This document shows positions 10,978-45,237 of a stretch of DNA of 64,000 nucleotides, in pieces. Both the position numbers and the translations under genes were made by a program. The notes under the pieces are model-generated. The model was not told the DNA's origin, made no database searches, and worked only from the letters and a program-made list of their open reading frames with translations. Source of the DNA: Dimorphilus gyrociliatus (taxonomy: Eukaryota; Animalia; Annelida); NCBI GenBank assembly GCA_904063045.1, contig CAJFCJ010000013.1, positions 974,156 through 1,038,155 on the forward strand, given 5' to 3'. Each line of letters starts with the position of its first letter. The stretch's first letter is position 1.

Positions 10978-13900
10978 TTACAATAGAAGGCAAGCTTGAC
11001 TTCTTAATCGACTCTGTTTCGTTATTAGATTAGCAACTTTACTTTTCTTTGTACAGAGAGGATTCTCTTCATCTGCCTCATCGTCATCATTAACAGTTGT
11101 ATTACTTTCAACTTCTAAAGTCCTCTTTAATTCACAATTCTCATCAATATTTTCGAGTATATCTTCGTAGTACTTGTCGGTTTTACCCACTGTTGCCAAG
11201 ATCATATCTGTCTCCAAAACGTTAACTCGCGGTTGTTTCTGATGATAAGAACAAAGCCAAGAGATATCGCCATTCCCAATTTGACACTTTTTTAAATAGG
11301 CATCTTCTGTTCTAAAATAACTCTGAATTTCCGTCTCATTAAGGTATTCTATCATTGAAATATACGATGTTGAGAGCTGATCTACTGACAAAGACGACAT
11401 TTCGTTAAACTTATCGACAAGTGAATTTCCTATATTCGAATTTAAAGCTACTAAAGGAATATCGGTTTCCTTTAGAAGAGTATAAACTCTTGCAAGATAA
11501 GGTGACCAAGTCTTTATTATTTCAGTAGTTTTTTCATCGTCAGGTGAAACATTCCATTTTAAAGATTTGAAATTTTCCGGAAGATGCCATCCTTCGTCAC
11601 ATTCACATAGAAATACGAATCTATATCCCAATACTGTATCATTTTCTGATCCTTCTTCCAAGTCTAAAATAGGAAGGTGTGGTAGACTTCTAATGTTAAA
11701 GTGACTATGAATAAACAAGAAATTCTTTAGAAACTTTCTCTCTGCCAACTCAAGTAGTTCGTTTAGCTTAATTTTGTTATTAGATTCGTCTATATTTGTT
11801 TCACTTATATTATCTTCTTTTTCTTCGTCTTCTTCAAATTTCACATGTTCTTTAACAAACTTTAAAATTTCATTATCATTGTCTTCACAATATTGCAAAT
11901 CCACTTTTTGATAATCCATCGATAGCATTCCTATCTCGGATCTCATCCAATTTAGACCCGTTCCCACAACTGCAATAATGATTGGCAATCGAAGAGTCAT
12001 TGCTGCGAAACGAAATTCCATTTGGCAATTTTTCGAAGTAACGTATTCGTCGGAGACGCATGCAATGACTACTTTTGCACTCTTTAAACCTTCTGTAATA
12101 TCTTGAATCAGTCCAGTCTGACCAACCTGTTCAATATCCATCCAACAGCTAATACCTTCTCCTTCTAGTAGTTTCTTGATGCGGCGAGGGTCAACCTTCC
12201 CAATAGCTCCTTCTTTACGTTTCGTACCCTTTTCAACTGCCTCTTCAGAATTGCTCCAACAATAGCTGATAAAACAAGAGGCGGTCTTTCTTTTCTTGGT
12301 GCGATAGCTCTTTGACAGAGAGGAGAGAGAGCACATCAAATCTACCAGCTTGCTTTTCACATTTTGTGGATTTTGCATGTTGATATACAACTATAAGGCA
12401 AAAGAATAGGATAAGATAAGATTAGAATTACTTTATGGATATAATGTATATAGTATTTGAAATCCTACGTCATCTGCGCAGAGCATTCCGACGTCGCTAT
12501 CTTTTTTCCAGTTGTCACTTTTCTCCATGAGAACAATTTGAGTTTTTACTTTTAATTGTTTTTTTGAATATAGAAAAAGTTCTTTGCAAATTCGGCTTTT
12601 GAGAAAATGATCCGACATCAAAAATAGAATATCTTTAGCTTCTTTCAATGTTAAAATTGTATTCTGAATATTCGACTCGCAGCTTTCGTCCACCATTTTG
12701 CTGTATCAGTAAAATACGAAAAAGTATTAATTGCAAATGTTATCCGACTGCAAAACTAACATTGAGACTCCGGAATTCTTGATTTCATTTGATATAATTT
12801 TGAATGTATTTTCAAACGTCTGATTGTTTAAATCTTTCGATGAGAATAAGAATACAACGTATGTATCGAACTGTGAACGTAGCTTTCTTAGATTTCTTAC
12901 ATCATTTTCCAAATGGAAATCGAAATCGCTTGTCGTTTCTGGAGGAAGCATTCCTGTTCGTCGAAAGGAAACACAATTGCGCATTGGAGAATAATCTTAA
13001 TCAAGCAATTCCTTTATTTATTTATACCTTTGAGTTCAGTAATAGAAAGTGTATGGAAATTATCGGTACATTGGAGGAAAGGAATTTTCAAATCTATAGC
13101 CCTTTTTATTCTTGTGTAGGGTATAAGGCAAGGGTCTGTTGAACCCTGATGAATACATTCTTTACAGGAGATATAGCAGTCGTATTTCACTCCGACGAAT
13201 GTTTCTTGGATAAGATTTTTGAATATATCATAAACAAGGAAAAGAATATTTTCCGGTTGAGGTCCTCGTGCATCAATAATCACAGTATTTTTACTACCGA
13301 CAGTATGAATAAACTGATTTAGGCTAAAATCTATTTATACTTACTCTGTTTGCTTTAAAACTCCTCTATGGCGATTTTTCACAAGAAACGAACCATTTTT
13401 CCACATGTTTGCATCATCGCTGAACTGATATAGACGAACCTGAGCTCTATTGCACAATCCTGTTGGTAGATAGTCAAAGCGAAATACCATCTTTGCACGC
13501 GTCTCGTTCTCACCAATTTTCTCATGAAAGAACGTTTTTATCTCCTAAAGATTATGTAAAATGTAATATAGATGAAGCGTTGAAAACAATATGAGAAGTT
13601 AATGAAAGATTTTATATCCTACCTTAGGTTCTTCAATCTTTAATAAACATGGGATTATACTTGCAGGTTCATTTTTAATTGGAAATGTCAAATCAAATTC
13701 CTCAGTTAGTCTTAATAACCAAATATGTAATTCTTCCGGATATATGCTAGGTGACCAAATTTTATTAAGATCTTTATGCATCAATTTACCTTCCTAAGAA
13801 ATAAAAACACGTAAAAAAAATATTGTTATTGAGTCAATTTGACAAACTATTATTGAAGTTTCGTGAACTGATATAAGACAAGCCATCACGTCAATAATCC

Positions 13901-16900
13901 ACTGAGAATTAATAATAATCTTAGATTTGAGGAATTCATTTTGAAAATGTTGAATTGATCCTAATTCGTGTAAGAATTCGGTTGCTTGAAAGATCTATAT
14001 AAAGAAATATAATGATATTTAATTTTTCTATCATCTTTATCTACCTCGGAAATGTCATTTATTCCGCATTCATTTGCATATTGACACACAGTTTCCCATG
14101 ATAGAAGATTTTTAAATGACTTTTCACTATTGTAACAAAGAATAGTTAAATTATCATAGAAAGATACGGAAGAGAATATCTTACCTGAGCATCTTTTGTT
14201 CGAAATTTAGATAAGCTAACGGAATCTTTTCATCCATGTACTTTTCTTTCAATGTTTCAGTTATCAAATCATCAACTAATTTGTCAATACCCTTTTTTTT
14301 TAAAAAGAAAACTTAGATAGGAAATTAGCTATATTTAATAGATTTCTCTTTAAAATTATACCTGTCCAGTGAATGAGGAAACTAAATGAAAGCTCGATAT
14401 TTGAGGAAATAATCTCTGTAACTCTTTCATTGGAAGATCAGTTTTCTCTACCTGTTTATTAGAGTAGTTTAAATAATGTCTCTTTGTGATTCTATCCAAT
14501 TACCTTGTCAATTTGTGTGCCAACAATAAAAATGGGAGCATTCGGTGCGTGACAAGCTATTGAACTCAACCAGAATTTCAATCCTGAATGTTCGTAACCA
14601 CTTCTCATGTTCCACAATAGAAAATATATTGCCCTATTCGTTAGGAAAAATTGATGAGTATTATAATATACTTCTTGCCCTGCGAAATCCCATATTGAAT
14701 ATTCTATCGAGTTAATTTTCCATGTTTTAATATCAATTCCATCTGTAACATCTGGTAATGTTTCTTCCGATTCTGTATCTTCTTCCGATTGTGTCATTTT
14801 GCGAATTAAACTAGTTTTACCGGCTCCTCCAAGTCCAACAAGCATCAGTTTTGTCCTTCTACACTCAACTGATCCTTCATGCAGTCTTCTCATATAGCTC
14901 ATTATCGCAGGGAGTCCCTTATTTACAATTTCTCTCGGTGGAGTTTTCAGAGATGGACAGCCGTCTAAATTCAAAGTGTGTATTGGTAATTTACATATTG
15001 CATGGTCGATTTCCTCAAGGAGAAGATTGTAAGACAGATTTAAAGATTTTAAATGTCTCAAGTATTTTACATTATAATCCAAAGTTTTAAAAGCTTGATT
15101 TGATAAGTTTAAAGTTTCCAATTTACTCAATGAAAATGAATTATCAAGTTGTTTCAAAGGGGCAGAAGTCATATGGGGAAGCCTTTCGTACATCTTTGCA
15201 GAGAAATATGCCTTCTCATCGGGAAGTTTCGTTTGTGTTTTGTTATCCTTTACGCTTTCCTTAAATATTGTTTTCAAACATTCCTCGTCAAGGCCAATAG
15301 AGGAGTAGAGCTTTGTCTTTCCCTTAGCTATGCATTCTCTATCTAATAGGTTCTGATAGTCCATTGTTTGAATAGAGATTGAGCTCAAGTGTAAAATCTT
15401 CAAGTTGTACAATTGAAAAATTACTTTTGGAAAATCTTTGAGAATGTTATCATTAAATATCATTGAGATAAGCTGAGTTAAAAGTGAAAGTTCTTTCGGT
15501 AACGTTGGTATCGGATTACCACTAATATCGAGTTCACGTAGAAACTTTAATGTAGTAATCTCTATTGGAAATTCTTCAAGTGAATTTTCAATTAATGTTA
15601 ATGATAACAAATATTTGGACGATTTTGAAATAATATCTTGTAGTTTATCATCGAATTTTGAGAATGAATAGAGCCATAAACTATTATCGGATGTTTCTTG
15701 AACATTAAACGATTCAAGTGATTTATCTTTGGAATGCAAATCACACAATTCCGTTTGAATATGCAGTTGTTCTTCCAATTCAGATTCGCATTTTTCAAGA
15801 AGCTATAATAAAAAATAATTAGGCTATTTTTATTAAATAATCTTTAAATGTATATTCTATTGTTACTTGTTTAAAAGTAGTGCCTGTTAAGTTTCCAATA
15901 TATCCAGTTTCAATGGCCAATAAGCAGAAATAGTCTATGAGTTGAACAAACCAAGGTAACGAATAGAATGGGTGAAAGCTTTCTGAAAACTTGAATGACA
16001 GATTTTTTCTTTAAAAAATAAAAGTATGAAAAAAAATTACGTTATTTACTTACCATAGTTTTCTGGTTTAAGATCTTTGAAATCTGAATCATTATGATTA
16101 TCTTAAGTGGTTTATTAACGGGAAATAGCTCTTTTGACGAACTGCGTATTATATGCATCTGGGGAGTTTTAGAGAAGCGAGTACCGATATCGCAAACTGG
16201 ATAAATAGTTGCGTATTTAAAATTTATGATATCCTTAAGCAGTAGAGGTCTTTCCCTTAACTCATTTGGAATTAATAATCTTCCTTCCAATTGGCTACTT
16301 ATCTTATTACTCATATTATCAAGATAATCAATCTCAAACAACTCCTGATGATAATCGAAGTTATCTGAAGGAAAATGAATATGATGAATAATATTTAACA
16401 AACACGTTACAAATATAATATAAATCAATTACAAAATTCTTGAAAGATTCCTTTCGTCCTTTCATTTAGTACAGTAGGCCTAAACAATGAAAAATCTTTA
16501 GCGTTTAGTAGGCGTTCAACTAGAGATTGAGAAACAATTGGCTTATTTAAATATTTTGAATGTTCATTCACTGTTGGATCATTTGTGAAATTTAATAAAA
16601 TCGATTGAAATTCATCAACACTTTTCCATGTTGGAGATGAATGATTGTTCTCCGTTATCAGGATTTCATTGTCAGTAACATCGGCTATAAAGTACATGTT
16701 ACTATTCGATTTGAATAATTCCCCAGGATAAATGAAATCATTGTTTGAAATATCCAAAATATGTTTCTATAAGTTAAAAATAGATTTACAAAAAAGAAGA
16801 TGATAATATATATATATAATCAAAATACTAAACTGGATAATATGTCAAGTCAATATCAACTAATGTATTATTATACGACATTTTGCATCTTTTATTCCAG

Positions 16901-19900
16901 ATATTTATCTTATCTATTAATATATCGTCCAAATACAATCTTAAAAGACAGACGTTATTCTATAATGATAAAGAAACATTAGAATTGTGTATATATAATC
17001 AACTATTAAATTATTAAAAAACTTACATCGGACGTCTCTTCAAATTCTATTCTAAAGGAAGAGTAGTTTAATAGAAAGAATTTCTTCTCTCTTCTATTAC
17101 CATAATCATCGATATAACTATAAGAATTCTGATTCATATAGAAAACTCGTTCAATTTCTTCACTGAAAATTTATATATAAAAAGATTGTTTTTTATTGAA
17201 AGAACAATGAAAACGTATAGTTTCTCACTTCTCGTATCTGAAAAGGAAGAAAGTATGTAAAATAAGTAAAATATAAAAGGTTCATTAGAAAATATTAAAC
17301 CTACTCGATTAGAAAGAAAGGATCCGACGAATTACGAATGCATATACAATTAGAAATTGTAACGGAATGACAAAATATTGGAGAATCCATAACTGGTAAT
17401 TGAGTTAAATTATTTAATATTTTAACTGTAAGATCTTGTAAGAAGGTTGGATTCATTTCTTTATTTAATCGCCTTAATAGCGAATTTCTATTTATAATTC
17501 CCAATTTAGTTGAATTTTCAACAGGATGCTTTACGAACATTATATTGAAGCTATCAACTAATTTCATATTTAAATGGATTAAACTGTTGAGCTATTATAA
17601 TATGATAAAAACTTACAAAATTCTTTGTTTTTAACTTTGTTATCGGCTTCATTGTTCCATGATGCATCAATTGATCTCTAAGAATTTTAATCTTTTAAAT
17701 ATTGGTCCCAAAATTACTTTAAATATACGTTTACCTTATAAAAAGTTGAGCATTTATAAAGTGAATATTCAACTATTGTTGAAATCTCTTTGCAAATTGG
17801 ACCAAGTAGGGAAGCAGCTTCGTCTACTTTCAAAGTCCTACAGCAGATTGAAATATTTAATTCATCAATTTTAACGTCAACTTCTACAGGACCAAAATGA
17901 AAAATGATTCTCTTCTGACAAAGCTCAATAAAGTGAACACAAATGTATTCCATTTGATAAATTGTTTGTAGGTAACGAATAATCGTTGAATTTAAGAAAC
18001 CGTTTATTTTTGTTTCTACTTGATACTCTATTACAACTTCAGATAATCCTTGGAGATGCTTTATACATTTTAAGTAAGACAATGTTAAGAAATATATAAA
18101 TTTTACGTAGCGTAACGCGTTACCTCATCGTCATAGTTGTCCTTTAAAGAAGTCTTAGGTAAGTTAAGTACAAACGTACTTGCATCGTTAGGCAATCTCA
18201 ACACAAGTCCAATATCTCTCATTATATCAAATACTTCTGATACCTAATTGGAAACAAGCCTTTCTTATCGTTCTATAGTCTCTTGTTTTCTTATAATAAA
18301 AACCTCATTTACGAGTGGATTTTTTATTGATAAAAAATTTAACGGAGTATTCTCACAGATTAACGTCTCTTTTCTTAAAAAATACAACCAACTGAGAGTA
18401 TTATCGCCACACAATACTAAAGAGGAACATAACTTTTCGATAAACTTTGAAACCCATATTGGATCCACTATAAAAACATCTCCAGTTTGAAATGATTGAA
18501 CAACAATAATAATTCCCTATGGAAAAAAAAAACTATCGAATTAAATCCTGTTACCGAAAGACTTAATATAAATAAACTAAACTATTTCATGAAGAAATTT
18601 CACAGTTTTGAAATAAGGAAATCTATGAAGTTGTAACTGCTTCTTTTCAAATTCTATTACTGGATTTAATTCAGTCAACTGTTGCAAAATTATCAACATA
18701 TCCTTTTAAATTTTTATGAAAAACAATTAATACCAACGTATTTGAAAGACATATCTTCTTCTAAAGGATCAAGCAAATCTTTAGCGGCAGTTTTCGATGA
18801 GATATTCTTGTTGTCCACTATTAAATAATAATTGGATATAGGATAATTATGGAGAGAGATCTATTCAAACCTTTCAGTATTGTCACAAGATCTGTAATGT
18901 CATTAAGTGATATGAAACCCTCGTGCTTTGAAAACGCTTTCTTTAAGTTTAGGCTAAACTCTTCAACTATTGAACTACTATACTGAAGAACGAAAAGATT
19001 TTACTAAACCATTTCTTTTAAATAAATTTCTATTACTCACATTTAGAGAGGCATCCATCTCTTTTGCTTTATCAAAGCTCTTTTCAATTTCCTTCCAAAG
19101 CTAAAAAAAACAAAACAGAAAATCATCTCATCGTCGTCGATTTTATTAAATCTTTTCATGTTATTCTTAACCTCTTTATTCCCTATCTTCTTTGAGTCTA
19201 TAAATTTCCAATTCTTTTCCCCATTCTCCGCCATTTTTCTTAATAATTCCCACAGTCCAATTAGGTTGTGTAGATTATTCTGATCATTGAATTCCATGTT
19301 GGATAATTCGTCGGCGCTATTAAAGAATCAAAGAATCATTAGATGAAGGTTGCAGATAAAGGTTTGTAGTTGTTTTCGTTTACCTCGTCAATTTCTCTAT
19401 CAATTTTCCTAGGCTTTCTACCTTTGAATTGATGAGAGAATGAATTTTCTCATCCAACAATTTCTCATCGATTTTTGACTGTTGAAATCCTAAAAATAGC
19501 ACATAAGGCTTCCAATTTGGTTTCAAATTCTGAAATATTTCAAAAATTATCCTCCAAACGTTTTCTCGCTTCTCATCTCTACTCATTTATCTTTGCTCTA
19601 AACAAAATGAAATATCTCACTTTTTGCAGAATTGATATGATAACGTCGAAAAAGAAGTTTGATGTTACGTCTCCATCTCCATTCACGTTGAATGGAACGA
19701 TAATGGAGGATCTTTGAGCGGAGATAAGCGAAGAGTATTCCTGTGGAATAGTGAAATAAATAGAGGAAAATTGAAACTACTAGAGAGGAGGATGAAGAGG
19801 ATCAATTACTTCAAATAAATCATAAAAGATCCAATCGCCATGAGTAAAAACTTGAAATGGATTTGTAGTTGTTTCCATTTTAGAAGAAAGTAGCAAAGAT

Positions 19901-21054
19901 TGAAAATTTAGTCGCTTCTTCTCATTTTCTTTTTCATACATTGGCTTCATATGAAAAATTATCGCTTTTTTAGTTTTAACTATTGTATTCCTGTACTTTG
20001 GTAAATCATCTGTAGTTTTAAGACATAAAATTATATTGATTGTGGTGGAATTTCGTTAAAAAGTTCTATTTTACCTGAATTCGCACTCTTTTGAAAATTT
20101 AGAGGATCCAAAAAAGGATTCAAAGATCTAAAAAATGCGGTATATTTGGGCCATTCACCGTCAGGAATCGATATAACCTCCTTTGCCTTTTTAATAGTTA
20201 AGATAAACAGAATAATAAGAAAGGCTAATTGATTAAACCTTAATTTGGGTAGAGGGCGAAATTTTTAAAATGAAATCTAATATTGATGATGATAAGCCTT
20301 TATTTTCTGAGATATGTTGCTGAAAAATGAATGAAATGATAGAGGAAATCTGATTTACTAGTAATTTTTGTAATCTTACAAATACTGTACTATTTGTACT
20401 AATTTTTCCAATCCAATAAATACTCCAATCATCAATGGCTGAACACTTTTGTATTTTCGCTTCATTGACATTAAACTTTTTCTTATTGAATAGAAAAAAC
20501 TATTGAAACGATAAGAGAGATGGTTTGCCTACTTACAAAGTATTTTTCGTCCGTAGCATGATGGCATTTAATATAGAATAATGCGAAAAATAGATTATTT
20601 AAATATTGAATATTATCAAAATCTATAAGACAGTTGACAACTTTATTTGAATATTCTCCCAAAGGATTCTGTTATTGACATTATAAAACAATTTGAATAA
20701 AGTTTAAAGATATAAGATAAAAAATATTTACCAATTTCGATTTAGAAAATATACAATGTAAAGGTATTCGATTTCTTGGGAAAAAGTTATAATTATGAAT
20801 GAATGAGTTATTTAGAACAATTGATACTGTTTCATTAAATCTAAATGCTGAAAAGAAATTTTATGTGAAAACAGATGGAAATTTTGAAATTAGATTATAC
20901 CTCTTTTACTCTTTTTTCCATATCCTGTATTAATTATTATGAAACTTGTTAAGTGTTAATATTAACTAATTTAAGAAGACGAACCTGAAAATTTACTAGC
21001 TTCTTTCTGAGGGGATGATGATAATATGCTTACACTTTTTGCACCTTTACTCAT
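10978..21054 (-). CDS. Roco protein A: N-terminal Cys-type LRR, degenerate Roc/COR-like region, LRR, Roc GTPase, COR, tandem TIR, C-terminal COR-like tail (multi-exon)
   Basis: ORF 14492-15778 has LRRs (LxxLxLSxN) followed by Roc motifs KLMLVGLGGAGKTS, T-DGIDI, IWDFAGQEVYYNTHQFF and GTQID. COR exons lie at 13000-14400. The TIR (CFISYCW...SCWMDIE...SKNCQMEF) is in ORF 10978-12390. Upstream exons to about 21.05 kb are homologous to paralogue B. The 5' boundary and several junctions (for example near 19590-19620) are unresolved. Confidence 0.85.
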
Positions 21055-21189
21055 ATCTCTTGACAAATATTGTTATCCTTTCAAGTAGAAACAGACTGAA
21101 CTGAGCTTTAGTGTTCAATTAAAAAATAAATTTATATTATTGATATTGTATTTAATAATAATACTAGAAAAAATGTAGTACTTCTATTG

Positions 21190-21760
21190 AGCGATAACTA
21201 AGGGGTCTAACAACTTTACCAGGGAGACATGATCAATATCTTTCGCAATAAAATTGGTTGTGTTCTATATTATAAGCAATTTACGAATATTCTTTCATCT
21301 TGTTTATATATGGCACATAGCTTCTCCTTTAAAAATATCTTGATATTTAGTACTGTCCATATACTCATCGTACACTGTTATTGCCCTGTCTCCATTCCTT
21401 TTTATGCAGGTCCAGATGGATATATGGCATATTTTTACAGAAACTCTTCCGTTTTGTTGCATCGCTTGATTCAAAGCCTGGTTTGCTAGTTGCTATTTGT
21501 CCTTTTAGCCCATTCCTCCTTAAAAAAAGTTTTGCACGTGGATATGAAGATCCTGTCTCTGAATCCCGATTCTTGAAGTACATTTCGTGCCTTCAGAAAA
21601 GAATGCTTTCTTGAAATATTTCACAGGATCCTCTCTTCTTTTACAGATTAAATTCTGGGAGTTGAAAGCTCTGATAAACTGACAGTGCTGTATTTGTGTT
21701 TTTTTACCTCTTGAAAATTGAAATAATTCCTCGCATGTATTCATCGTTATAGATGGGCTG
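21190..21760 (-). pseudogene. Decayed Tc1/mariner transposase remnant
   Basis: Frameshifted fragments LFLRRNGLKGQIATSKPGF...KRKSFCK (HTH2 and linker) and ISIWTCIKRNG...YMDSTKYQDIF (VMVWGC...MNS..YQDIL block). Confidence 0.6.
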
Positions 21761-22079
21761 TCGGCGAACAACTTGTCGGCTAGCGTATTGACGGCACGCA
21801 CATCATTGAGAGAATAAAGTAGCTCTGGGTCGAAGTCATTTATGTTAGGCAATTGAGTAGCTAGGTCAAAGTAGTGGACATTGTGAATAGTTTCCAGGTT
21901 TATCATACAGTCCCAATAAAAAGTCTCTGACAGTGTTGTTCTCAAAGGGAAAAATGCAAATTATTAAACCAACAGGATATGTTTCATTATCATTTTTCGT
22001 TTAGAATAAAGGATAAGACATTTATAAACCGAATTTATAGATAGATTAATAAAATGATTTGCTTAAACTTTCTATATAA

Positions 22080-22760: not shown

Positions 22761-22999
22761 TAAAGTAAGAAAAATTGCTGTAATGAGTTCTATCTATAAT
22801 TCGGTTGTATAAATACCTTATTCTTTTTTCTAAATGAAAAAAGATAATTAAGCAAGTCTGTTAGTTAAATAATTCACTTTTTCCACTGTAAGAACAAACC
22901 TGTCAGAGACATTCTATTCGAGCTGTATTTCAATTTACCAAATTTGTAGTTACATCGGCGGTAGTTTGAAATAAAGGAGTTCGATAACAACCGAGAGGG

Positions 23000-24110
23000 A
23001 GGTTAATGTAAGCAGATTTCTTATTTGCTGAATAATTTCCAGGGTCCATGATTGGGACTATATTGTCCGATGAGTAGATCAACTTGACCCCTAGGTAATG
23101 CTTGCTAAGTATAATGTGAATTAATATACTGTTTATAGCAAATTCATTGCTATCGGTGGTAGAGAGTCTACTACGTACGCATTAATGTCGTAGTTTTTAC
23201 CCAAGTGAGGAAGAATGACTTTTACTTTCTCAGTTTGAATGGTGGTAGAAGTACCTGATACTGGAACTTGAACCTTTGAAGCATAAATAGGTTTAATTTC
23301 ATTGTTGACATCAGACTGATTCATATTTACAGAAAAGGTTGATTTAGGTGTTGTTGAATCTTTATGATGTAAAGAAGTATCATATGGTTGATGACACTTT
23401 TTGCAATTAAATTCGGATAGGCAATAGTCGCTTGTATGTCCACAACACACCCAATTACAGCAACTGTTCAGCAGCTGAACTAATTGCTTTCTCCTTTCAA
23501 AGTTTATGTTTATATGTTATGGGCAAGAAAAGGTGCAGTTCTGTTGATGATTCGTTCTAAGGCTGTTCCTCCAGCTAATGAGGTATTGCTGTAGACATAT
23601 TTCGAATCCTAGATCTTGAAAGCTATTTTTATTAGCATAATCGTTGTTCATGTTGCGGAATTGACGAGTGTGTACTTCTTCCGAAATCCAACAGAAATAA
23701 CGGTTTTATAAAGATATTGCAAGTTAGTAGCATTGAACCTTTCAAATGGATCAATTCTTTTGTTTCTTTGAAAATCAGTTCGTGTGGTAAGTTCGTACGT
23801 TGTAGAGTCGGTTTTGGTTTGTTTATTAGTAATAAATGACGCTCTGTGCTCTTCTTTGTTTTGAAAATTTCCAAAAAAATGTTCAATGTTCGAAGATCCG
23901 CCATCTTGTTCTTTGACCGTTGAGACATGTTCCATCTATTACAATTATTTTTGTAACCTTTCTTCAAATTTATTTCTTTGCTCCTTCAATTTATCATCGA
24001 GAGTTGATGATTATGTCCTATTGACCATTTCAGTTGTGCTTTCCATTTCAGTCGGACGGTTGGTGCAGTTGGCCATTTAAATTTTACTCTTTCTTCCGAT
24101 TATTTTATTC
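23000..24110 (-). mobile_element. BEL/Pao LTR-retrotransposon gag-protease fragment
   Basis: Cys-His motif CCGHTSDYCLSEFNCKKCHQPYDTSLH (BEL gag type), the protease-region motif GQVDLLIG near 23070-23095, and a gag N-terminus at about 24077. Confidence 0.75.
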
Positions 24111-24730: not shown

Positions 24731-24732
24731 CT

Positions 24733-26550
24733 CTAAGAATATCTAGATTTTACAAAGATTCTAATCTGCCATTTTGTTCTCCTTTGAAGATCGTTGAGCA
24801 ATTCGGTGTAGGATTTTATATTGAATTGTTGGCGTTCTTTGGTGCCTATCGCCGTATCTTTTATTGAGATTTTCGTAAATTTGATGAGATCACAGGGTGA
24901 CACTTTTGCAATTCTCATTTTATGTGGAGAATAGGGAGAGCTAAGCTTCCAAGATAGGTATTTCACGTATGATTGCCTTCTAAACTGTCGACCTAGTGTT
25001 CGATATAGTTTTCGTAATGTCAGAGCTGAGTCTGATATGGCCGTTTTTGGCATGAGGTCATTGGTACTACTTGTACTGCGCGAAAATGTATTCATGTAAC
25101 TACTAGTAGGTATACTATATCCCCCTACAGTTCGGCAGATGGGCTCATAAAATCTATTGCACACAGTCTTGAAATAGGCTGATAAATTCTCCATTACGGA
25201 ATTCAGGTAGATTTGCCATTCGTAAAGTTGTCTTTTTGTGGTTCTTTATTACGCATAATTTACATTTTTTTATAACCTTTTGTTTTATTCCAGTTGATGC
25301 ATATATAAGATGTAAACTCTCTGCTTACTTCATCCAAATAGTTTGGAGAGATGCATGATTGTTATTATCGTGTATATATTCGATGATTCTAGTATGGTGA
25401 GCGTTTACAATAATCTTTCTTGTCTCTCGTGATTTGGATAGCCTTTCCATAGGAATAGTGCTTTGAACAATTTTATATAGATATCGTTGTGCAATGTCTT
25501 GTTCGGCGGTGATTAGCTTTGTGTCTTTAGAAGGTTTATTGACTCATAGACGAGAGTTGGTATTAAATCTTAAAATCCAGGCCATGGTATGACGCATCTT
25601 TGGCCAGCTCCATTTATAGCGAATGTGAAATCCGCTATTACTAGGTTATTTCTTACATTTAAATGATTTATTTCAATATTTCTAGTGCCGTTTTGTCATA
25701 GAATGCTCAGTGTCCCTGTGGGGTAAATTGACTTGAATTTCATCGGATAATGGATAATAAAGAAGCTTGCTTAACAGTACAATCTAGAGCAGTAAGGGCT
25801 ACAAAAAAAGGTGAGCTTGTGGCACCGAAAAAATATGGAGGATTATCACAGCAGATAAAATATTACCCTTCTGTTGATAATGCCATGGTGGGAGATGTAA
25901 AATTTAACCTCATCATGTGGCACTGGTCGGACATAATTATGGGCAAACAATGTTTGAATACCTTTAATATATTCATCATTGTAAATGGATTGTCAACGGA
26001 TGGTTTGTAATCGAGCTCTCGCCTTGAAACGGTTATTCTGAAGTACTTTGAGGTCATATTTAAAAGGAGTAGAGGGAAAGTCCAATAGTCATTCGACGGT
26101 TGCGTATAGTTTTCCAGTAAGTCAGCAGCACGAATATCTTGCGAAAAAAACGTGGTGGGCCTGAAACGACCTATGTCCGGCAATTGGAAAACTTGATCGA
26201 AGTTATGGACATTACGGCTAGTTTCAGTATATACTATGCTGCAATTCACCATATTTGTAGAATCGATTACGTTTGGGATGGTGTGAGGTATAGGAGTTCG
26301 ATACCAGCCCAGAGGAAATTTAACATAGGCAAACTTCTTATTTCGGAACATCCATAGTGGGAATTGTATTGTCCGATGAGTAGGTCAACTCGACCACAAG
26401 GTATTTCTTGTTCGGTGTAAAGGGAATTAATATATATTGCAGGTTAGCCTGCCATCGGTGGTAAGAAATCTACCACTTACGCTTTAGCGTCGTAAGCTTT
26501 ACCAAAGTGATGAAAATTGACCTTTACCTTCTTAGTTTGAATGATTTTAT
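24733..26550 (-). mobile_element. Internally deleted BEL/Pao pol remnant (protease, start of RT, post-RNase H region, integrase)
   Basis: Motifs GRVDLLIG, FPLGW, FYISHHGII (RT start YLPHH), WPKMRHTMAWILRF, IIEYIHDNNNHA (integrase Zn finger) and WKLSSPYSPH. Confidence 0.75.
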
Positions 26551-30390: not shown

Positions 30391-30395
30391 TCGAT

Positions 30396-31049: not shown

Positions 31050-32460
31050 ATATCTCTGGCGTCTATCTATTTTCCTGTGATCGGTGTATATCTCATATAT
31101 GCGTTCCAATATTAGTTGGGTAATATATCCAAGTTTAAAGTTGTACATTGGTTGTTGGCACAGACATAATACAAGGTCGATTGTAGATTTGGTTGATACT
31201 GATCTTCCCGTTATTTGGTTCTCTTTTGCATGTCGTTAAATAATTCCATACAGGATTTCGAGTTCAGTTGTTGTCACTCTTAGTAATAGCTGCAAGATTA
31301 TATTCAACGTTTTTATTGATAGCATGATTAGTTTGATGAAGCCAATAGATGATACGGTCATCGGTTCGCCTAGATCATCAATCGCGAAACTTGTGGGGCG
31401 ATGATTAATTTGGTTTTCTATAGCCGACAATGTGAGGTGCATAGTTTCTCATTTTGACAGTTAATTTTTCTTTAATTCCGACGTGAATATCACTTTTTTT
31501 ATGAATCCGATGAGTCGATCAACAATGCCCGTTTTATGTGGAGAATAGGGAGAGCTAAACTTCCAATATAAGTTTTTGACATTGGATTGTTTCTTATTGT
31601 GACTTTCCAAGGTTTAATTCTTTATTATACATAGTTTGCATCTTTTTAAGACCTTTTTTATTTCTATAGTCGCATATAGAAGGTGTAGATTCTCTAACTT
31701 CATACAAATAGTTCAAAGGGGTGTGCATGATTTATGTTATAATGGATGTATTCAATAACTTTAGTAATAATAGATTGACGAGCATCCACGATAATCTTTT
31801 TTTGTCTCTCGCAATTTATCCAATCTAGGAACTGCTTTTACTGATAAGAAAATAGTTTTATATGGTTTTATGAAGTTTGATGCCCTTATTGCTGCTGTCA
31901 ATTCTGCTCGCGGAATGGATGCTCTAGGAGAAGAGCAGAGACGGGACGCCTCGGCATATATGTAAATTGCGTGGGGAAGTGGAATCTTTCTATTAATTGA
32001 ATAGTTTCCGGAAATTTCTGCTGTTGTATTATACTAGGTGTTCTAACAGCACGAATATCATTGATAGAACGGGGTGGATCTGAGTCGAAGTCGTCTATGT
32101 CAATTGAATAACAGGGTCGATGTGATGGACATTGTAACTGGTTACCGGGTATACTATTTTGCAATTTACCATATTTATAGTTTCGTCACAGGCAAAGGGA
32201 CTCAAAACCAACCAAGGGCATGTTTAACAGAGGTAAATTTCTAGTTCTTTATAGTTTTAAGGGTCCGAGATAGGAACTGCTTTTACTGATAAGAAAGTCA
32301 ACTTGACCACTGGGTAGTGCCTGTTCAGTATGGTGTAGGTTAATGTATATTGCAGGCTGACTTGCCATTGGTGATAAAGAATCTACTACGTATGTATTAA
32401 CGTCATATTCCTTTCCTAAGTGAGGTAAAATAACTTTTACTTCTCAGTGAGAAAGCTTGA
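31050..32460 (-). mobile_element. Internally deleted BEL/Pao pol remnant (protease, RNase H piece, integrase)
   Basis: TEKVKVILPHLGKEYDV matches the 23133 ORF. Also GQVDFLI, SIPRAELTAA (Pao RNase H PRLEL motif), VIEYIHYNINHA and an integrase core homologous to 24900-25000. Confidence 0.75.
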
Positions 32461-32480
32461 ATTCGTTGTTGGCGTAATAT

Positions 32481-34520: not shown

Positions 34521-37500
34521 TCAAGACACAACACATGCTCGACTAGTTTTTCGTTCTGTTGTGAATTCATTTGATTTTGCATTTAACTCTATATTTTCTT
34601 CCACAAAAGATTCAGAATGACCAACTATTTCAGCGGTATTTTCATTTACCACACTTGTTTCTTTTTTATCTTCTAAAAAGTTCTCTAACATATCTTCATA
34701 ATATTTATCAAAAATGTTAGAAGAATCCATATTTACGTTACCGTCTAGTACTCTAACTCTAGGCTGTTTTTGATGCTTAGCACATAACCACATTTTATTT
34801 CCAAATCCCATCTGACACTTTTTCAAATAAGCTTCATTCGAACAAAAGTATGCCTGATTTGTTTCGTCATTTGCCTTTTCAATTAAGGATATGTAGGCTT
34901 TTGAAAATTGGTCATTATCTGACTCCTCAAATAGAGAACAACTATTAGTAATTTTTTCAAGCAGAGTACTTCCTATATTCGAATTTAAAGCTACTAAAGG
35001 AATATCGGTTTCCTTTAGAAGAGTATAAACTCTTGCAAGATAAGGTGACCAAGTCTTTATTATTTCAGTAGTTTTTTCATCGTCAGGTGAAACATTCCAT
35101 TTTAAAGATTTGAAATTTTCCGGAAGATGCCATCCTTCGTCACATTCACATAGAAATACGAATCTATATCCCAATACTGTATCATTTTCTGATCCTTCTT
35201 CCAAGTCTAAAATAGGAAGGTGTGGTAAACCTCTAACACTATGATGATCGTGAATAGAAAGTACATTCTTTAGAAATTTCCTCTGTATTAGTTCTAGTAA
35301 TTCAATTAACTTGATTTTGGTATTAGATTCGTCTATATTTGTTTCGCTTATATTATCTTCTTTTTCTTCGTCTTCTTCAAATTTCACATGTTCTTTAACA
35401 AACTTTAAAATTTCATTATCATTGTCTTCACAATATTGCAAATCCACTTTTTGATAATCCATCGATAGCATTCCTATCTCGGATCTCATCCAATTTAGAC
35501 CCGTTCCCACAACTGCAATAATGATTGGCAATCGAAGAGTCATTGCTGCGAAACGAAATTCCATTTGGCAATTTTTCGAAGTAACGTATTCGTCGGAGAC
35601 GCATGCAATGACTACTTTTGCACTCTTTAAACCTTCTGTAATATCTTGAATCAGTCCAGTCTGACCAACCTGTTCAATATCCATCCAACAGCTAATACCT
35701 TCTCCTTCTAGTAGTTTCTTGATGCGGCGAGGGTCAACCTTCCCAATAGCTCCTTCTTTACGTTTCGTACCCTTTTCAACTGCCTCTTCAGAATTGCTCC
35801 AACAATAGCTGATAAAACAAGAGGCGGTCTTTCTTTTCTTGGCGCGATAGCTCTTTGACAGAGAGGAAAGAGAGCACATCAAATCTACCAGCTTGCTTTT
35901 CACATTTTGTGGATTTTGCATGTTGATATACAACTATAAGGCAAAAGAATAGGATAAGATAAGATCAGAATTACTTTATGGATATAATGTATATAGTATT
36001 TGAAATCCTACGTCATCTGCGCAGAGCATTCCGACGTCGCTATCTTTCTTCCAGTTGTCACTTTTCTCCATGAGAACAATTTGAGTTTTTACTTTTAATT
36101 GTTTTTTTGAATATAGAAAAAGTTCTTTGCAAATTCGGCTTTTGAGAAAATGATCCGACATCAAAAATAGAATATCTTTAGCTTCTTTCAATGTTAAAAT
36201 TGTATTCTGAATATTCGACTCGCAGCTTTCGTCCACCATTTTGCTGTATCAGTAAAATACGAAAAAGTATTAATTGCAAATGTTATCCGACTGCAAAACT
36301 AACATTGAGACTCCGGAATTCTTGATTTCATTTGATATAATTTTGAATGTATTTTCAAACGTCTGATTGTTTAAATCTTTCGATGAGAATAAGAATACAA
36401 CGTATGTATCGAACTGTGAACGTAGCTTTCTTAGATTTCTTACATCATTTTCCAAATGGAAATCGAAATCGCTTGTCGTTTCTGGAGGAAGCATTCCTGT
36501 TCGTCGAAAGGAAACACAATTGCGCATTGGAGAATAATCTTAATCAAGCAATTCCTTTATTTATTTATTACCTTTGAGTTCAGTAATAGAAAGTGTGTGG
36601 AAATTATCGGTACATTGGAGGAAAGGAATTTTCAAATCTATAGCCCTTTTTATTCTTGTGTAGGGTATAAGGCAAGGGTCTGTTGAACCCTGATGAATAC
36701 ATTCTTTACAGGAGATATAGCAGTCGTATTTCACTCCGACGAATGTTTCTTGGATAAGATTTTTGAATATATCATAAACAAGGAAAAGTATATTATCTGG
36801 TTGAGGTCCTCGTGCATCTATAACTATTGTATGCTCACTATGGGAGATAATATTTATCAGTTAATGGTTTTTATTGTTAGAAATTGTTATACATACTCAT
36901 TTTTCAATAAAACTCCTCTATGGCGATTTTTCACAAGAAACGAACCATTTTTCCACATGTTTGTATCATCACTGAACTGATAGAGACGAACCTGAGCTCT
37001 GTTACATAAACCTGAGGGGAGATAGTCAAAATTGAAAACCATTTTTGTTCGAATTTCGTTGTCTGACAGCTGGCTTTTAAAGAATTGTTCCAAGGACTAA
37101 AGGATTGCAAGAGTAAAGCGCTATACTATAAGTATAATTATTTCGGATAAATTTTACCGTTGGTTCATCTATTGTTAGTAAACATGGAATCAGGCTCGCT
37201 TTTTCACCTTTGAGTGGAAACGTTAAATCAAACTCTTCTGTTAGTTTTAGAAGCCATGTATGTAGTTCTTCCTGATATTTCTCCTTTGGCCATATCCTCT
37301 TGAAATCTTGATGCAGTAGTTTTCCGTCCTATAAGAAATAATTTATTTTGTTTTTTTTTTCATAAATTCATTCATTTATTCTCACTTTAATGGTATTTTG
37401 TCGAACTGATATAAGACAAGCCATCACATCAATAATCCATTGAGGGTTAATAATAATTTTAGATTTAAGAAACTCATTTTGAAAATGTTGAATTGATCCT

Positions 37501-40500
37501 AATTCGTGTAAGAATTCAGTGGCTTGAAAAATCTGCAAAAATTCAAAAAGTTGTCTAAAATCTATAAAAGGATTATTTATAGATAATTACCTCCCATGTA
37601 TCAATTATTCCACATTCGTTTGCAAGTTTACAAACTTTGTCTATGTCTAACAAGTTATCTGCATTTTTCTTGTTTTTTTCACTGTATGAGATACATTTTT
37701 TTTAAAGGATGAAAATTTCAATTGCATAACTTACTTAATGAGTTTCTTTTCAAATTCCAGATATGCAACAGGTATTTTCTCATCCATATACTTTTCCTTT
37801 ATTGTTTCAGTAATTAAATCATTAATCAATTCTTGAATACCCTTATATTGAAAAATTCGTTATAGAGCATACAATGTTTCAGTTTGACTCCATACCTGTC
37901 CACTAATGGTAGAAACATAATGGAATCCTGAAATTTGTGGAAATGATTCTTTCAAGTCTTCAACAGGAAGTTCAGATATTTCCACCTGTTGTAATTTGAT
38001 ATTTAATAACAGTACATTACATTATAGAAGAAAATTTTGAAATAAATATCTATTCTACCAACCTCATCGACGTGCGAGCCTATAATGAAAATAGGGGATT
38101 TTGGCGCGTGACAGGCTATTGAACTCAACCAGAATTTCAATCCTGAATGTTCGTAACCACTTCTCATGTTCCACAATAGAAAATATATTGCCCTATTCGT
38201 TAGGAAAAATTGATGAGTATTATAATATACTTCTTGCCCTGCGAAATCCCATATTGAATATTCTATCGAGTTAATTTTCCATGTTTTAATATCAATTCCA
38301 TCTGTAACATCTGGTAATGTTTCTTCCGATTCTGTATCTTCTTCCGATTGTGTCATTTTGCGAATTAAACTAGTTTTACCGGCTCCTCCAAGTCCAACTA
38401 GCATCAGTTTTGTCCTTCTACACTCAACTGATCCTTCATGTAATCTTCTCATATAGCCCATAATAACCGCCTCTCCTTTGCTAGCAATTTCTCTTGGTGG
38501 TGTTTTTAGCGAAGGACAGCCATTTAATTTCAATGTTCGAATAGGTAAGTAGCATATCTCCGGATTGATCTCCTCAAGGACTAAGTTGTGCGATAGATCC
38601 AAGAATCTTAAACTTTTCAGAAATTTAATACCACCATCTAAAACTTTAAATGACTGGTACGATAAATCTAAGTGAGTAAGCTTTCCTATAGAAATTTCAT
38701 TCTTTAACTGAGAAAGAGGAGAGGAAGTCATATGAGGTATTTTTTTATAGAGTTTAGCACAAAATGCTGCTTTTTCATCAGCATCATAGATATAAGTAGT
38801 ATTCTTTATGGCACAACTTGAAAACAAAGATTCTAAATCTTTCATTGTAAGATTAATAGCAGAAAAAATTCCTTCATACTCTTCTCGATAATCGCTGAGG
38901 GTCTTTAAGGTTACGTTTCCTTTTATTGAAGGATAGTGAAAAGAATTCAGGAAACAAGATTTTAGATTGTAAAGTTTGAAGATAACACTCGGAAATTCTC
39001 TGAAAATATTATTTTTCACTGATAATTTCTCCAAGTGCACTAAGTTTGATAGCTCGTCCGGTAATTGATTAATTGGCATTCCATCAATATCAAGTCTAAT
39101 AAGATATTTCAGTTTAGTTATGCTTTGAGGAAATTCAGTTAAGGAACTTTTTTCAATTGTTATTGTCAATAAAGTTTGGACTGATTTATGGAACGATTGA
39201 TAAAATTGCTCGTTTACATTTGATAGCGTTAAAAAGAGTAGCGTGTCATCCGAAATTGTTTTCCAAACACTACTTGAACTAACATTAGGTGAGTTTACTT
39301 TAACATGCAAATCACAAGCTTTTACATCAAGTTGAAATTGGTCTTTCATATTCGTTTCAATGGTTTTCAACATCTATGAAATGATTTATAAGAATAAAAC
39401 TAATTAAATTTGAATAAAATTATACCATTTCAATATTATCTTCTGATAAATTTTTCGTATATCCAGTATTCAGTGCCAAAATACAGAAATAACTTTTCAA
39501 TTGAGCGAACAAAGGTAAGAGAAAGGAAAAGTAGAAATCTTCTGATACCTGAACGAAACAAGATTATTAAACAAAATCATTGAAGAATTCAGCATAAACA
39601 ATTACAATCATATCTGGACTTAGGAAACGAGCTATGTTTAACATCATAATTTTTTTCATTGTATCTGATGTAATTGGTAGTTTTCTTGGAAATTTTTGCA
39701 TTATATGTTTCATCGGCTGTTTTGCAAAATCTGAACTATCGGAGCATATTGGGTATAGAGATGCCGACTTTAAGTCCACCATATTCTTTAGTAATGGAGG
39801 AATATTTTCTAGTTGATTGGGAATTAGAAAAGATCCTCTTATCAACTTTTCTGGAGAGTTATTCTTGATGTATGATAAGAAAGGTTTCAAGTTCATATTC
39901 AGATAGTCTTAAAATTAAACTTCAGTATTATACAGTATAACAAAATACGAAAATTGATGTTCAATTAAATCTTACATTGTTTAGAAATTTTGTCGTAAGT
40001 TCTCTCATTTAATACCTCGGGTTGAAATAATGAGAAACTATCGGCTGTCTTTAATTTTTCAATGAGACTTGGAGAGGCAAAAGGCCTATTTAGAAAAATG
40101 GAAATTTTCTGTGCAAGTTCTGAACTTTCTGGGAAAAACAAACAAATATTACAAAGAAACAGATAATAGAAATTCAAGTTAAATAACTAACTTGAAGCAT
40201 CTTGTACTAAGGCTTTAAAACTGTCAAAGTCAACCCAATCGGGATATTTATCTGTGTTGTACTTAATCAAAATTTGATTTTCCTTTACATCAACTATTTA
40301 TAGAATATGAAAGTATATTATCATCTATTAAAGATTAAAACGTTCCAAAGAGCACTTACTAATATAAATTTGTCTCTTTTTCGAAATGAAGATCATTCCG
40401 GGCATTAATTTTTCAGTTGAAGACTTGAACTGTCTATCCTTTAAGTAAAAGATAAAAATTTAGTCCCTAAAACAAAAAATCACTTATATTTTTTTACTGG

Positions 40501-43500
40501 AAAGTATGTAAAGTCAATCGATGTGAGCTTATGATTCAAGTAAATACTGTATTCCATATTTTCAATAGATATCCTTTCCAGAAGGATCTTGTTCAAATAT
40601 ATCATTAAATTTAATTTAGAAGTCTGTTTTTAATAAACAAATGCATTATTTTAAAAGTTAAAACCAATGTAAATAGATCAGAAAATACTGACAGTGCGAA
40701 GAAATACCGGAAATTTGAATTTAATTTCCAGTGTAGAATACTTCCGAAGACATAATTTCCTTTTAGTATATTCTCCAGAGCCAGTTTGAAATGAATACGA
40801 ATCTTTTCGAATTGAGAAAATCGTCTCATCACTAAAGGAGTTAGAGGTTAGTTAAAAGAGATATATCCAACAATAAATTTATTATATACCCTTCTTTTCT
40901 GTAAAAAAGAAAAACAAGGGAAAATTAATTATGAACAAGATTTCATTAACATCAAAACATTTACTCAATTTTAAAAAACTCTTTCTCATCGACACCTTCA
41001 ATATTTGAAAAGGATATAGAATTAATATTTGATAAGTAAAGCTTTCTTGGAAATGATATTAAGTTTCCATATCTTCTTGTTTTAGTTTGAGTAAACTCTT
41101 CAGAAAATGACGGTTTCAATTCCTTATACATTTGGGTAATCAATGTATATCTATCAAATGATCGTATTTCCATTGATTCAAACAGTTTTTCGTTTCCTTG
41201 ACTAATAAAATTATTATCGACTGTTCAAAGTTAAATATTAAGAAAATATTAATGCCCTTTTTATAAAGTTGGATAAAACGTACAAAAATCCGAATTTTCT
41301 TTCTGTTCATTTGGTTTCTTGCCCCAAGGAGTAGTCAATATTTTCTAATTGAAATTTAATTTTAATATTCTATTTTTAGATATCATATTTTATCTTACCG
41401 AATAGAATACTGAAGATTTGAACAAAGCGTACTCTATCAATAAAGAAATTTCAGCTGAGATTATAGCTAAAAGCGAAGGAGCTTCATCAACATCTAAGGT
41501 TCTTGATAAAAGCAAAATATTTGACTCGTCGAAATGAATGTCCACTTCAACTGGTCCAGAATGGAAAATAACTCTCTTTTGAGATAATTCAATAAAAGTA
41601 ACAATTCCCAGTTTTATTTCATAAACTGCATGAATTAAATAAGTAATCATGGAGCTAACCGATCCGGTGAAGTTTGTTTCGCATTTATAGCAGATGTCTA
41701 TTTGCGTTAATCCTTCAACATCCTACAAATTGAATGATAAACATTTATGTTTTGTAAAGTTGCATTAAAACCTTATTATATTCTTCTCTCCTCGATATAC
41801 TTGGTAAATTATGACAAAATATAACAACATCGTTCGACAATCCTAGTACAACGCCAATATCTTTTAGAATTTCCAAACCGTTTTTAATCTGAAAGTAATT
41901 ATTTATTATTGACTTATACTTTTCATTTTATTCAAAACAACAAATGGATTCTTTATATTGGAAAAATAGCTTTGCGCATTTTCACAGATGATCGTCTCTC
42001 TTTGTAAAAAATATAGCCATGCTTGAACATCATCATTACAATGAATGGATGACGAATTCAATTTATGAAAAGCTTTTGATAACCACTTAGGATCAACTAT
42101 TATCCAATCGTCTCTTTTAAAACGCTTGAAAAGAATAACTTCTCCCTTGAAAAATATTTCCTATACAATTAAACCCTAAAAGTACATTGAACTTACTATG
42201 GAATGTAGAAATTTTAAAGCTTTAAAATAAGGAAATCTGTGAACTTTAATTTGCTTCTTCTCAAATTCATCTTCATCATTGAAACCTTTCAGCTATTGAG
42301 AAACACATGTAATCGATATTTCACGCAACAAAAACATTTTATATAAATACATAATCGACTGACGATTCTTCCAAACGGGCAACTTCAAAAGTTTTAAACT
42401 TTTCCGGGGGAATCCTTAAATCCTTAAATACAGCGGCATGCTTTTCAATCACCTCTAAAGTTTCTGTATTACGTAGAATTTTCTCTTAATATATATCTTT
42501 TGCAAGAGAAGAAATCTATTATTACCATTTAATAGATCATCTAAGGAAATGATGTCTATAATATCATTCAGTGGTATAAAACCTTCATGATTAACGAAAA
42601 CATCTTTCATTTTCTCCTTAAATTTTCCTACTGCTAAACTTTCATACTAAAAAAAAAATAACTGTTTAACATTTAGTCCATATAACATTTATCACATTTT
42701 ATCATACATTTAGAGAGGCATCCATCTCTTTTGCTTTATCAAAGCTCTTTTCAATTTCCTTCCAAAGCTAAAAAAAACAAAACAGAAAATCATCTCATCG
42801 TCGTCGATTTTATTAAATCTTTTCATGTTATTCTTAACCTCTTTATTCCCTATCTTCTTTGAGTCTATAAATTTCCAATTCTTTTCCCCATTCTCCGCCA
42901 TTTTTCTTAATAATTCCCACAGTCCAATTAGGTTGTGTAGATTATTCTGATCATTGAATTCCATGTTGGATAATTCGTCGGCGCTATTAAAGAATCAAAG
43001 AATCATTAGATGAAGGTTGCAGATAAAGGTTTGTAGTTGTTTTCGTTTACCTCGTCAATTTCTCTATCAATTTTCCTAGGCTTTCTACCTTTGAATTGAT
43101 GAGAGAATGAATTTTCTCATCCAACAATTTCTCATCGATTTTTGACTGTTGAAATCCTAAAAATAGCACATAAGGCTTCCAATTTGGTTTCAAATTCTGA
43201 AATATTTCAAAAATTATCCTCCAAACGTTTTCTCGCTTCTCATCTCTACTCATTTATCTTTGCTCTAAACAAAATGAAATATCTCACTTTTTGCAGAATT
43301 GATATGATAACGTCGAAAAAGAAGTTTGATGTTACGTCTCCATCTCCATTCACGTTGAATGGAACGATAATGGAGGATCTTTGAGCGGAGATAAGCGAAG
43401 AGTATTCCTGTGGAATAGTGAAATAAATAGAGGAAAATTGAAACTACTAGAGAGGAGGATGAAGAGGATCAATTACTTCAAATAAATCATAAAAGATCCA

Positions 43501-45237
43501 ATCGCCATGAGTAAAAACTTGAAATGGATTTGTAGTTGTTTCCATTTTAGAAGAAAGTAGCAAAGATTGAAAATTTAGTCGCTTCTTCTCATTTTCTTTT
43601 TCATACATTGGCTTCATATGAAAAATTATCGCTTTTTTAGTTTTAACAAAGGCAATTTTGTTTGGAGATAATTCAACTGTGTAAAATATAATACTGTAAC
43701 TATTTATGAATATAACAATAATAATTCTAAATTCTTAGTTACTCAATTTTTGATGCTGTGGAAGAAATGGATCAAGAAATGGATCAATTATTTTCAAATG
43801 TTCTTCCTTAGATTCGTTTTTAGACGTAGGTATACATGTAGTCTGATTTATCTGTTTTCACAAATTATTGTTTCAATAAGAATAATAGCATCAACTTTAT
43901 TTACAGAAATATATTTTTTCATATTTCTAAAGATTTTTCTATTTTTAATAAAATCAATGCTCCAAGAAGACAAACTGTTGTTGTTATCTAGTGATACCTT
44001 TGAAGGAATATCAAAAAAAAATATTTATTAATATTAAAAGATATAGACTAATGTTATTTTTTACCGATTTAATACTTATCGAGAATTCATTTATCCAATA
44101 AATACTCCAATCTGTTATATTCGAACAATTCTTTAGTCGTAGTACAATTTTAGAAAGTTTTAGCTATTTTCAAAATTATCAATTAGTATAGTACAGAATT
44201 GTAGCCATATTATTACGTTAGATTTATCTGACGGTGTCTGCTTGCTCAAATATAGTAATGCAAAAAAACAATCATTTAAAGAAGACATATTTTCGAATTT
44301 CAACGATAGTGTCATTTCTGATGAAAGGCTTTTCAAAGGATTCTGAATGTTTATATAACATGTTTTATAAACCAAATATATAATAATAATTGTCATACCA
44401 TATAAGACGTCGAAACAAGACAGTGTAAAGGTATTTTATTTCTTGGAAAGTAATTTAGTTTATTTAAATTGACGACATTTAATTTCTCTAAATCACTTGT
44501 CAAGTCTTCAAGTGAACGAAGTTGAGAATATGAAAACACCATTAACTTAGTTTGATACAATTTAACTATAGGAGAACATACCTGTTTTTTCTACCATCAT
44601 ATCCATTTGCTCTTCAACTTAATATATAGTTTATTATATAACAAAGAGTGAATAAAAAAATAAATTAACTCTTACCAAAAAGATCATCCACATTATCATT
44701 ATCATTTGGAGGTGCATTTGAGATGTCAAAGCTATCGTCCATATTCTCATTCGCCTGAGAATTAATAAAAAAATCGCTAAAGATGTCAGAGCTATCGTAT
44801 ATTGAGTCTTCATCGCTTAGATCTGTTGAGGACTGTAATCCCAATATTGTTTGTTGTTGCTGTTGTAGAATTCCTTGACTGTTTTGCTGAAGTGCTTGAG
44901 GTGGTGGAAGCAGTATGTCCCCCAGTTGTTGCCTGTTTTGCTGAACTGCTGGAGATGATGACACCACTATGTTTCCTAATCGTCGCCTATTTTGTGTCTG
45001 CTGTGGCGTAATTCCACTCTGCATTTCTGTATTTTGTACTGCTTGATGTGGCAGCAAAAAATTTAGCTCATCTATATTTTCGTCAAGTTGCTGCTGCTCC
45101 TGTTCCGGTATTGGTGGTGTAATTTCGTTATACATTTCTGTATTTTGCGCTGCTTGATGTGGCAGCAAAAAATTCAGTTCATCTATATTTTCGTCAAGAG
45201 TTAAAACTCTCTTTTCTTCAGAATTTTCGTCACTCAT
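34521..45237 (-). CDS. Roco protein B, paralogue of A (LRR-Roc-COR-TIR-TIR), with an acidic/Gln-rich first exon at 44676-45237
   Basis: ORF 38003-39373 (LRR plus Roc motifs) and ORF 34521-35933 (TIR plus tail). Exons are homologous to A (FPRNKIPLHC, DWSIYWI, PFLDP). ORF 44665-45237 ends in the donor G|GTAAGA. Confidence 0.85.
45020..45198 (-). repeat. Two-copy coding repeat LDENIDELNFLLPHQA(A/V)QNTEM in exon 1 of Roco B
   Basis: Two near-identical segments of about 67 bp at about 45020-45087 and 45133-45198. Confidence 0.9.

Follow-up and report, generated by a model that had tools for sequence, protein, structure and literature searches.

The window, by which we mean the whole 64-kb stretch of DNA analysed here (C13:974156-1038155, in contig CAJFCJ010000013.1 of the annelid Dimorphilus gyrociliatus), contains two Roco-TIR genes, A and B, that lie in tandem in the same orientation, offset by 23.5 kb and separated by a 13-kb spacer. 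Positions given below are window positions unless a contig is named. The window is a single gap-free sequence with zero N and 33% G+C (guanine plus cytosine), and the assembly from which it is taken comprises 77.9 Mb in 349 contigs. The published genome of D. gyrociliatus is a haploid PacBio assembly of ~78 Mb in which the median intron measures 66 bp (PMC7854359); the assembly used here agrees with it in size, and the window in the shortness of its introns. The extents of the two genes, each of which has an uncertain 5′ end, are as follows.

Gene A, ~10978-20860, minus strand: N-terminal region, leucine-rich repeats (LRR), Roc, COR, TIR-like exons, TIR, and a tail with CaaX box CLLL
Gene B, ~34521-44590, minus strand: architecture as in gene A, with a tail ending in CaaX box CVVS

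Pfam and homology searches were made exon by exon. A 428-residue exon of gene A (15778-14492) matches LRR and Roc (E 7e-23 for Roc), the exon at 13283-13014 matches COR-B (E 1.3e-9), and the last exon (12390-10978) matches TIR_2 (E 1.8e-12). Roc is followed directly by COR in gene A, which is the arrangement by which the ROCO family is recognized, and the homologous exons of proteins from a related worm carry both COR-A and COR-B annotations. The switch in these genes is Roc-COR, and an NB-ARC domain is not part of the architecture. The two TIR1-like exons between COR-B and TIR_2 have no Pfam match when each is searched singly, and no Pfam domain is found in the N-terminal exons or in those of the tract designated T4 below. 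In-frame counterparts of the exon blocks of A are found by tblastn in B, and they are present in the seven other loci of the family as well. Homology between A and B extends upstream to about 20860 in A; the long open exons are kept in both genes, including a last exon of 470 amino acids that is open in both.

A CaaX box ends every family member that can be read to its terminus. In A this is CLLL (10981-10992), in B it is CVVS (34524-34535), and the other copies have CVIC, CVIV, CLIM or CVIT; from their motifs, A and B would be predicted to receive different prenyl groups.

Near-identical tracts in a saturated background

We compared A and B by global alignment of the gene bodies, together with a maximal-segment scan (match +1, mismatch -6) and 2000 column shuffles. 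Identity outside the tracts is 51%, and along the alignment 100-bp windows alternate between 96-100% and 40-65% identity. The near-identical tracts are named T1, T2, T2b, T2c, T3 and T4, and the diverged segment between T1 and T2 is referred to as the patch.

T4, A 19039-19980 = B 42706-43647, minus strand: 942 bp with 0 differences, covering part of exon X1, exons X2-X5 and four introns
T3, A 14547-14898 = B 38106-38457, minus strand: 352 bp with 4 differences (98.9%), all synonymous, inside the LRR-Roc exon
T2c, A 13865-13979 = B 37403-37517, minus strand: 115 bp with 8 differences (93%), in a COR-A exon; an older tract
T2b, A 13356-13448 = B 36908-37000, minus strand: 93 bp with 3 differences (96.8%), in a COR exon; an older tract
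T2, A 11778-13244 = B 35321-36788, minus strand: 1467 bp with 7 differences (99.5%), including one 1-bp intronic indel
Patch, A 11685-11777 = B 35228-35320, minus strand: 62 of 93 positions identical (67%), 31 differences, mid-exon, with 0.65 of synonymous sites differing (pS)
T1, A 11427-11684 = B 34970-35227, minus strand: 258 bp with 0 differences, in the conserved post-TIR segment of the last exon

An earlier note, made from the sequence without database searches, had reported four of these tracts and a divergent patch of about 90 bp, and direct comparison bears these out, with 942/942, 258/258 and 348/352 identical positions in T4, T1 and T3, 99.5% identity in T2, and the patch as listed; T2b and T2c are two tracts beyond those four. 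The tracts score between 59 and 1562 in the maximal-segment scan, and the maximum score in the 2000 column shuffles is 42; T1, the patch and T2 merge there into one segment (11427-13274). BLASTN of A against B returns a 3.7-kb high-scoring segment pair at 84.5% identity, in which tracts and diverged sequence are mixed, the 942-bp perfect match, and a 74-bp match at 80%.

Silent sites show the same alternation. We calculated pS and synonymous divergence (dS) by the Nei-Gojobori method in windows of codons along the two large exons, a comparison that had been named beforehand, and found that dS is not uniform along the genes: pS and dS are both 0 inside tracts, the windows that straddle an edge have values of 0.05-0.28, and outside the tracts pS is 0.5-0.9 and dS ranges from ~0.8 to undefined, mostly above 1.3, and is thus saturated.

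The introns within the tracts, which were called by reading the minus strand in three frames, are likewise shared. There are seven, all short (32-76 nt) and of GT-AG type, four being in T4 and three in T2.

T4 introns (A), minus strand: 19809-19741, 19620-~19572, 19383-19317 and 19171-19101; all four identical between A and B
T2 introns (A), minus strand: ~13027-12996 (or to 12955), 12759-12702 and 12468-12392; two of them carry one T2 difference each

Outside the tracts the introns of A and B cannot be aligned. The 5′ edge of T4 falls in the middle of an exon and its 3′ edge lies 2 nt inside the next intron, and T3 and T1 are contained wholly within exons. The mid-exon drops in identity described in the earlier note are as abrupt as it had said, and the peptides that it quoted from the boundary of the 942-bp tract are accurate. 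Because tract edges lie within exons and introns are included in the tracts, the copying that they record occurred at the level of DNA and not by a processed-RNA route.

The correspondence between tracts and protein modules is partial. T3 spans G1-G3 of Roc, including a poorly conserved linker, with the G4 end lying outside the tract, and T2 contains the COR-B end, the two TIR1-like exons, TIR2 and three introns. A proposal that the signalling modules have been homogenised therefore holds for Roc G1-G3, the COR-B end, the TIR region and the post-TIR segment, but the 942-bp N-terminal tract has no recognizable domain, and most of COR-A as well as the Roc G4 end is unconverted. Similarly, the 1.47-kb tract had been said to hold both TIRs; it does contain the second, as TIR_2, but the two exons of the first are those that lack a Pfam match. 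Besides most of COR-A (COR1, COR2 and COR4, with A-B amino-acid identities of 55-70%) and the Roc G4 end, the tracts also exclude the tail and the type of CaaX box.

Copy number, ancestry and age of the tracts

The family to which A and B belong has nine loci, these being A, B, three on C13 (at 944, 957 and 1071 kb), C61, C63, C57 and C5, and A and B are the only family pair found in close tandem with the same orientation. T4 occurs in exactly two copies in the 77.9-Mb assembly, and the T1-T2 region has two copies at 98-100% identity with all further genome matches being no more than 72% identical. An all-against-all comparison of the nine loci revealed no further stretch inside a gene with an identity of 85% or more, and the mosaic is therefore specific to the A/B pair. 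We also considered a mobile element as the source of the tracts and rejected it, since the tracts are present only in A and B and the tract exons are homologous to exons of the other paralogues. One further match, a 2.07-kb inverted segment at 97% identity between C61:86683-88744 and C63:110904-112969, lies outside the Roco genes and could be a haplotig left unmerged, or else a repeat element.

A tree of the unconverted LRR joins A and B as sisters, with support of 91/99, and of 100/99 when the proteins of the related worm are added. The path between them is nonetheless long, at 1.12-1.23 substitutions per site, exceeding that between C61 and C13-957k and that between C63 and C57 and resembling the distance to the counterparts in the related species. 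Amino-acid identity between A and B is lower than that of other paralogue pairs in most unconverted blocks:

N5: A-B 46%, other pairs 54-65%
N6: A-B 49%, other pairs 61-64%
LRR: A-B 50%, other pairs 60-67%
COR1: A-B 55%, other pairs 79-84%
COR4: A-B 63%, other pairs 82-84%

This depth of divergence across most unconverted blocks indicates that the duplication is old. It also shows that the LRR is not disproportionately diverged, because A-B divergence relative to that of other pairs is about the same in the LRR as in COR1, COR4 and the N-terminal blocks; the suggestion that the LRR sensor parts have been specially diversified is thus not upheld. With dS saturated, the ratio of nonsynonymous to synonymous divergence cannot be computed for the LRR, and diversifying selection is not measurable there.

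The best database matches are Roco proteins annotated as 'pats1-like' from molluscs and rotifers, and unnamed proteins of the related worm (SRR23372228, SRR23372216). The latter (P0001-P0005) are only 49-59% identical to the D. gyrociliatus paralogues and must therefore come from another species. An orthologue of the A/B clade was not found in the data from this worm, and protein-level identity profiles among its own paralogues give no information, as every pair has a conserved Roc core. An intron following the FLCE(H/C)D(E/Q) motif of the last exon is apparent in several paralogues (C13_1062k, C57 and C63) and is missing in A (~11560), B (~35100) and one C13 copy, which suggests an intron loss common to A and B.

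The tracts are not all of one age. Divergence differs between T4 (0/942) and T3 (4/352; p=0.005), between T1 and T4 combined and T2 (p=0.019), and between T2 and T2c (p=3e-6), and such significantly unequal divergence points to at least three events of different age. Base composition also varies, with 34.0% G+C in the tracts versus 29% elsewhere and 27.9% in tract introns versus 23.3% in other introns, and the G+C at third codon positions (GC3) of T4 exons X2-X4 is 37-46%, compared with 15-32% in the homologous exons of paralogues. These elevated values are compatible with GC-biased conversion and support it weakly.

The sequence around the two genes contains repeats of several kinds. Two direct repeats of 462 bp in the spacer (23573-24034 and 30396-30857) are 99.8% identical, with one difference, and lie 6.8 kb apart; they look like the long terminal repeat pair of a young element, although the open reading frames (ORFs) between them are short and have zero Pfam match. 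The spacer holds repeat debris as well. A diverged ORF family is present in three copies around and between A and B (minus strand, 21520-21945, 25863-26351 and 31898-32164), with matches at the DNA level (22931-23241, 26242-26543 and 32251-32448) of 65-71% identity and zero Pfam match; these are probably decayed fragments of mobile elements. A Pfam search of the spacer ORFs as a whole gave nothing. Downstream of gene B, in a region rich in 5S-type repeats, is a 439-bp inverted repeat (49664-50102 and 59007-59445) with arms that are 100% identical.

Probable repeated conversion and its alternatives

We consider the mosaic to be best explained by repeated non-allelic gene conversion between the old tandem paralogues A and B, as the earlier note had proposed, and put the probability of this reading at roughly 0.85. 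The recombination mechanism, its direction and the selective reason for which parts stay identical are what we infer from the pattern. A and B would be the products of an old duplication that placed them in tandem with one orientation, after which most of each gene diverged to saturation. Homologous-recombination repair, with the neighbouring paralogue as template, would then have replaced six or more segments, 93-1467 bp long, on three or more separate occasions, carrying introns and silent sites along with coding sites as expected of copying at the DNA level. Homology-dependent repair needs similar sequence, and the tracts may thus be islands that have gone on exchanging since they were last homogenised, with new events beginning and resolving inside them. 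With flanks that are now only ~50% identical, new events would be confined to these islands of homology, which would keep the edges abrupt.

Several observations sit less comfortably with conversion. The saturated 93-bp patch persists between two near-perfect tracts, T1 and T2; either these were converted separately, or conversions covering the patch were removed by selection. Within the patch A retains the family-consensus residues and B is derived, and no third-party donor for it was found. A and B are sisters in converted and unconverted segments alike, with only the branch lengths differing (0 versus 1.12), so there is no topological conflict that would demonstrate transfer. The base-composition signal is weak and uneven, as GC3 shows no rise in T1 (18%) or T3 (26%). 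The published assembly was built from pooled animals with PacBio self-correction, polishing with Quiver and Pilon, and merging of haplotypes with HaploMerger2 (PMC7854359), and polishing together with HaploMerger2 could have erased a few real differences inside the near-identical tracts; given this pipeline, the exact 100% identities may be slightly flattering. Finally, the mosaic is known from a single sequence in one genome assembly.

False placement of alleles in tandem is a known class of assembly error, and the earlier note had itself offered two hyperdivergent alleles as an alternative, to which can be added the possibility that consensus building or polishing homogenised parts of two genuine paralogues. 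The pooled animals and the succession of correcting and merging steps are favourable to such an artefact, and cross-polishing of near-identical repeats would be expected to leave perfectly matching runs such as those of 942 and 258 bp. However, reads that are ~50% identical would not cross-map, so that polishing cannot make the identity, and allelic units should be collinear, whereas self-BLAST detects no collinear similarity in the spacer or the outer flanks. The window is moreover continuous, each tract is present in exactly two copies in the assembly, and neither a collapse nor a chimeric join produces four collinear tracts in two genes that are both complete and open, leading us to regard an artefact of any of these kinds as improbable. 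We hold just as little expectation that the identity predates the tandem arrangement, either because hyperdivergent allelic lineages recombined and were later captured in cis by unequal crossing-over, or because the diverged parts were imported from donors that have since been lost. It is true that one genome cannot separate allelic from non-allelic exchange and that conversion, since it depends on homology, does not begin easily where the background is 50% identical, but the assembly contains no donor for the diverged parts (the best other paralogue has 45-56% amino-acid identity to them), the flanks of the two units are unrelated, the several tract ages are in keeping with exchange that continues in cis, the unconverted LRR groups A and B in a single clade with good support, and more steps are needed.

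Extreme purifying selection at the nucleotide level, perhaps acting on embedded RNA or regulatory elements, could in principle hold the tracts identical, and the tracts do overlap conserved parts of the protein such as the Roc core and TIR2. Yet introns and synonymous sites are identical or nearly so over as much as 1.47 kb, the poorly conserved Roc linker is identical too, and the same segments are only ~70% identical in other paralogue pairs, making this explanation so implausible that it is effectively refuted. A different matter is what conversion might be for. A speculative and rather unlikely idea is that selection maintains the partition and that A and B work as a pair. Conversion would then keep the N-terminal segment, Roc core, TIRs and post-TIR segment identical as contact or output surfaces, and the parts for recognition and targeting would stay distinct, these being the LRR, COR-A, the 93-bp patch (which would be protected) and the tails with CLLL versus CVVS. 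Were it true, the two genes would be an animal Roco-TIR counterpart of paired immune receptors.

Sequence exchange occurs in the NLR resistance-gene clusters of plants, and the comparison that the earlier note drew with them is useful as an analogy only. Both involve clustered LRR-containing and TIR-bearing genes of immune type with chimeric histories, but A and B have a Roc-COR switch in place of NB-ARC, the tracts are in one pair among nine paralogues, and preferential diversification of the LRR is unsupported. A nearer precedent is interlocus conversion giving mosaic divergence in tandem paralogues, as at HMA4 of Arabidopsis halleri (bioRxiv 10.1101/2025.10.29.685298), where the genes, like A and B, are neighbouring, tandem and in one orientation, and interlocus gene conversion has also been reported in surveys of Drosophila and Caenorhabditis duplicates (PMC2588116, PMC3966223). 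A and B share with known interlocus conversion the discrete tracts of hundreds to ~1500 bp, the homogenisation of silent sites and introns, and an intensity that varies along the gene. They differ from most described cases, which concern young duplicates, in having a saturated background of 51% identity against 99-100% in the tracts, and in coming from one genome. Within the lophotrochozoans, LRR, Roc, COR and TIR are likewise combined in Aplysia, where 'TLR/MyD88-like' genes with ROC and COR are described and ROC-COR-TIR combinations catalogued (PMC9334734); that literature catalogues architectures and does not describe conversion mosaics, and the worm genes add a C-terminal CaaX box.

A mosaic generated by interlocus conversion is thus a well-described phenomenon that in itself opens no long-standing question, and what is new is an unusually sharp instance of it in an annelid Roco-TIR family. 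It has practical consequences, in that reads from inside the tracts will be assigned to the wrong copy in short-read mapping and in expression counts, and whole-gene alignments of these Roco-TIR genes will give wrong trees, orthology calls and dating. For the family itself, A and B represent strongly contrasted partial concerted evolution among the immune-type genes of an invertebrate.

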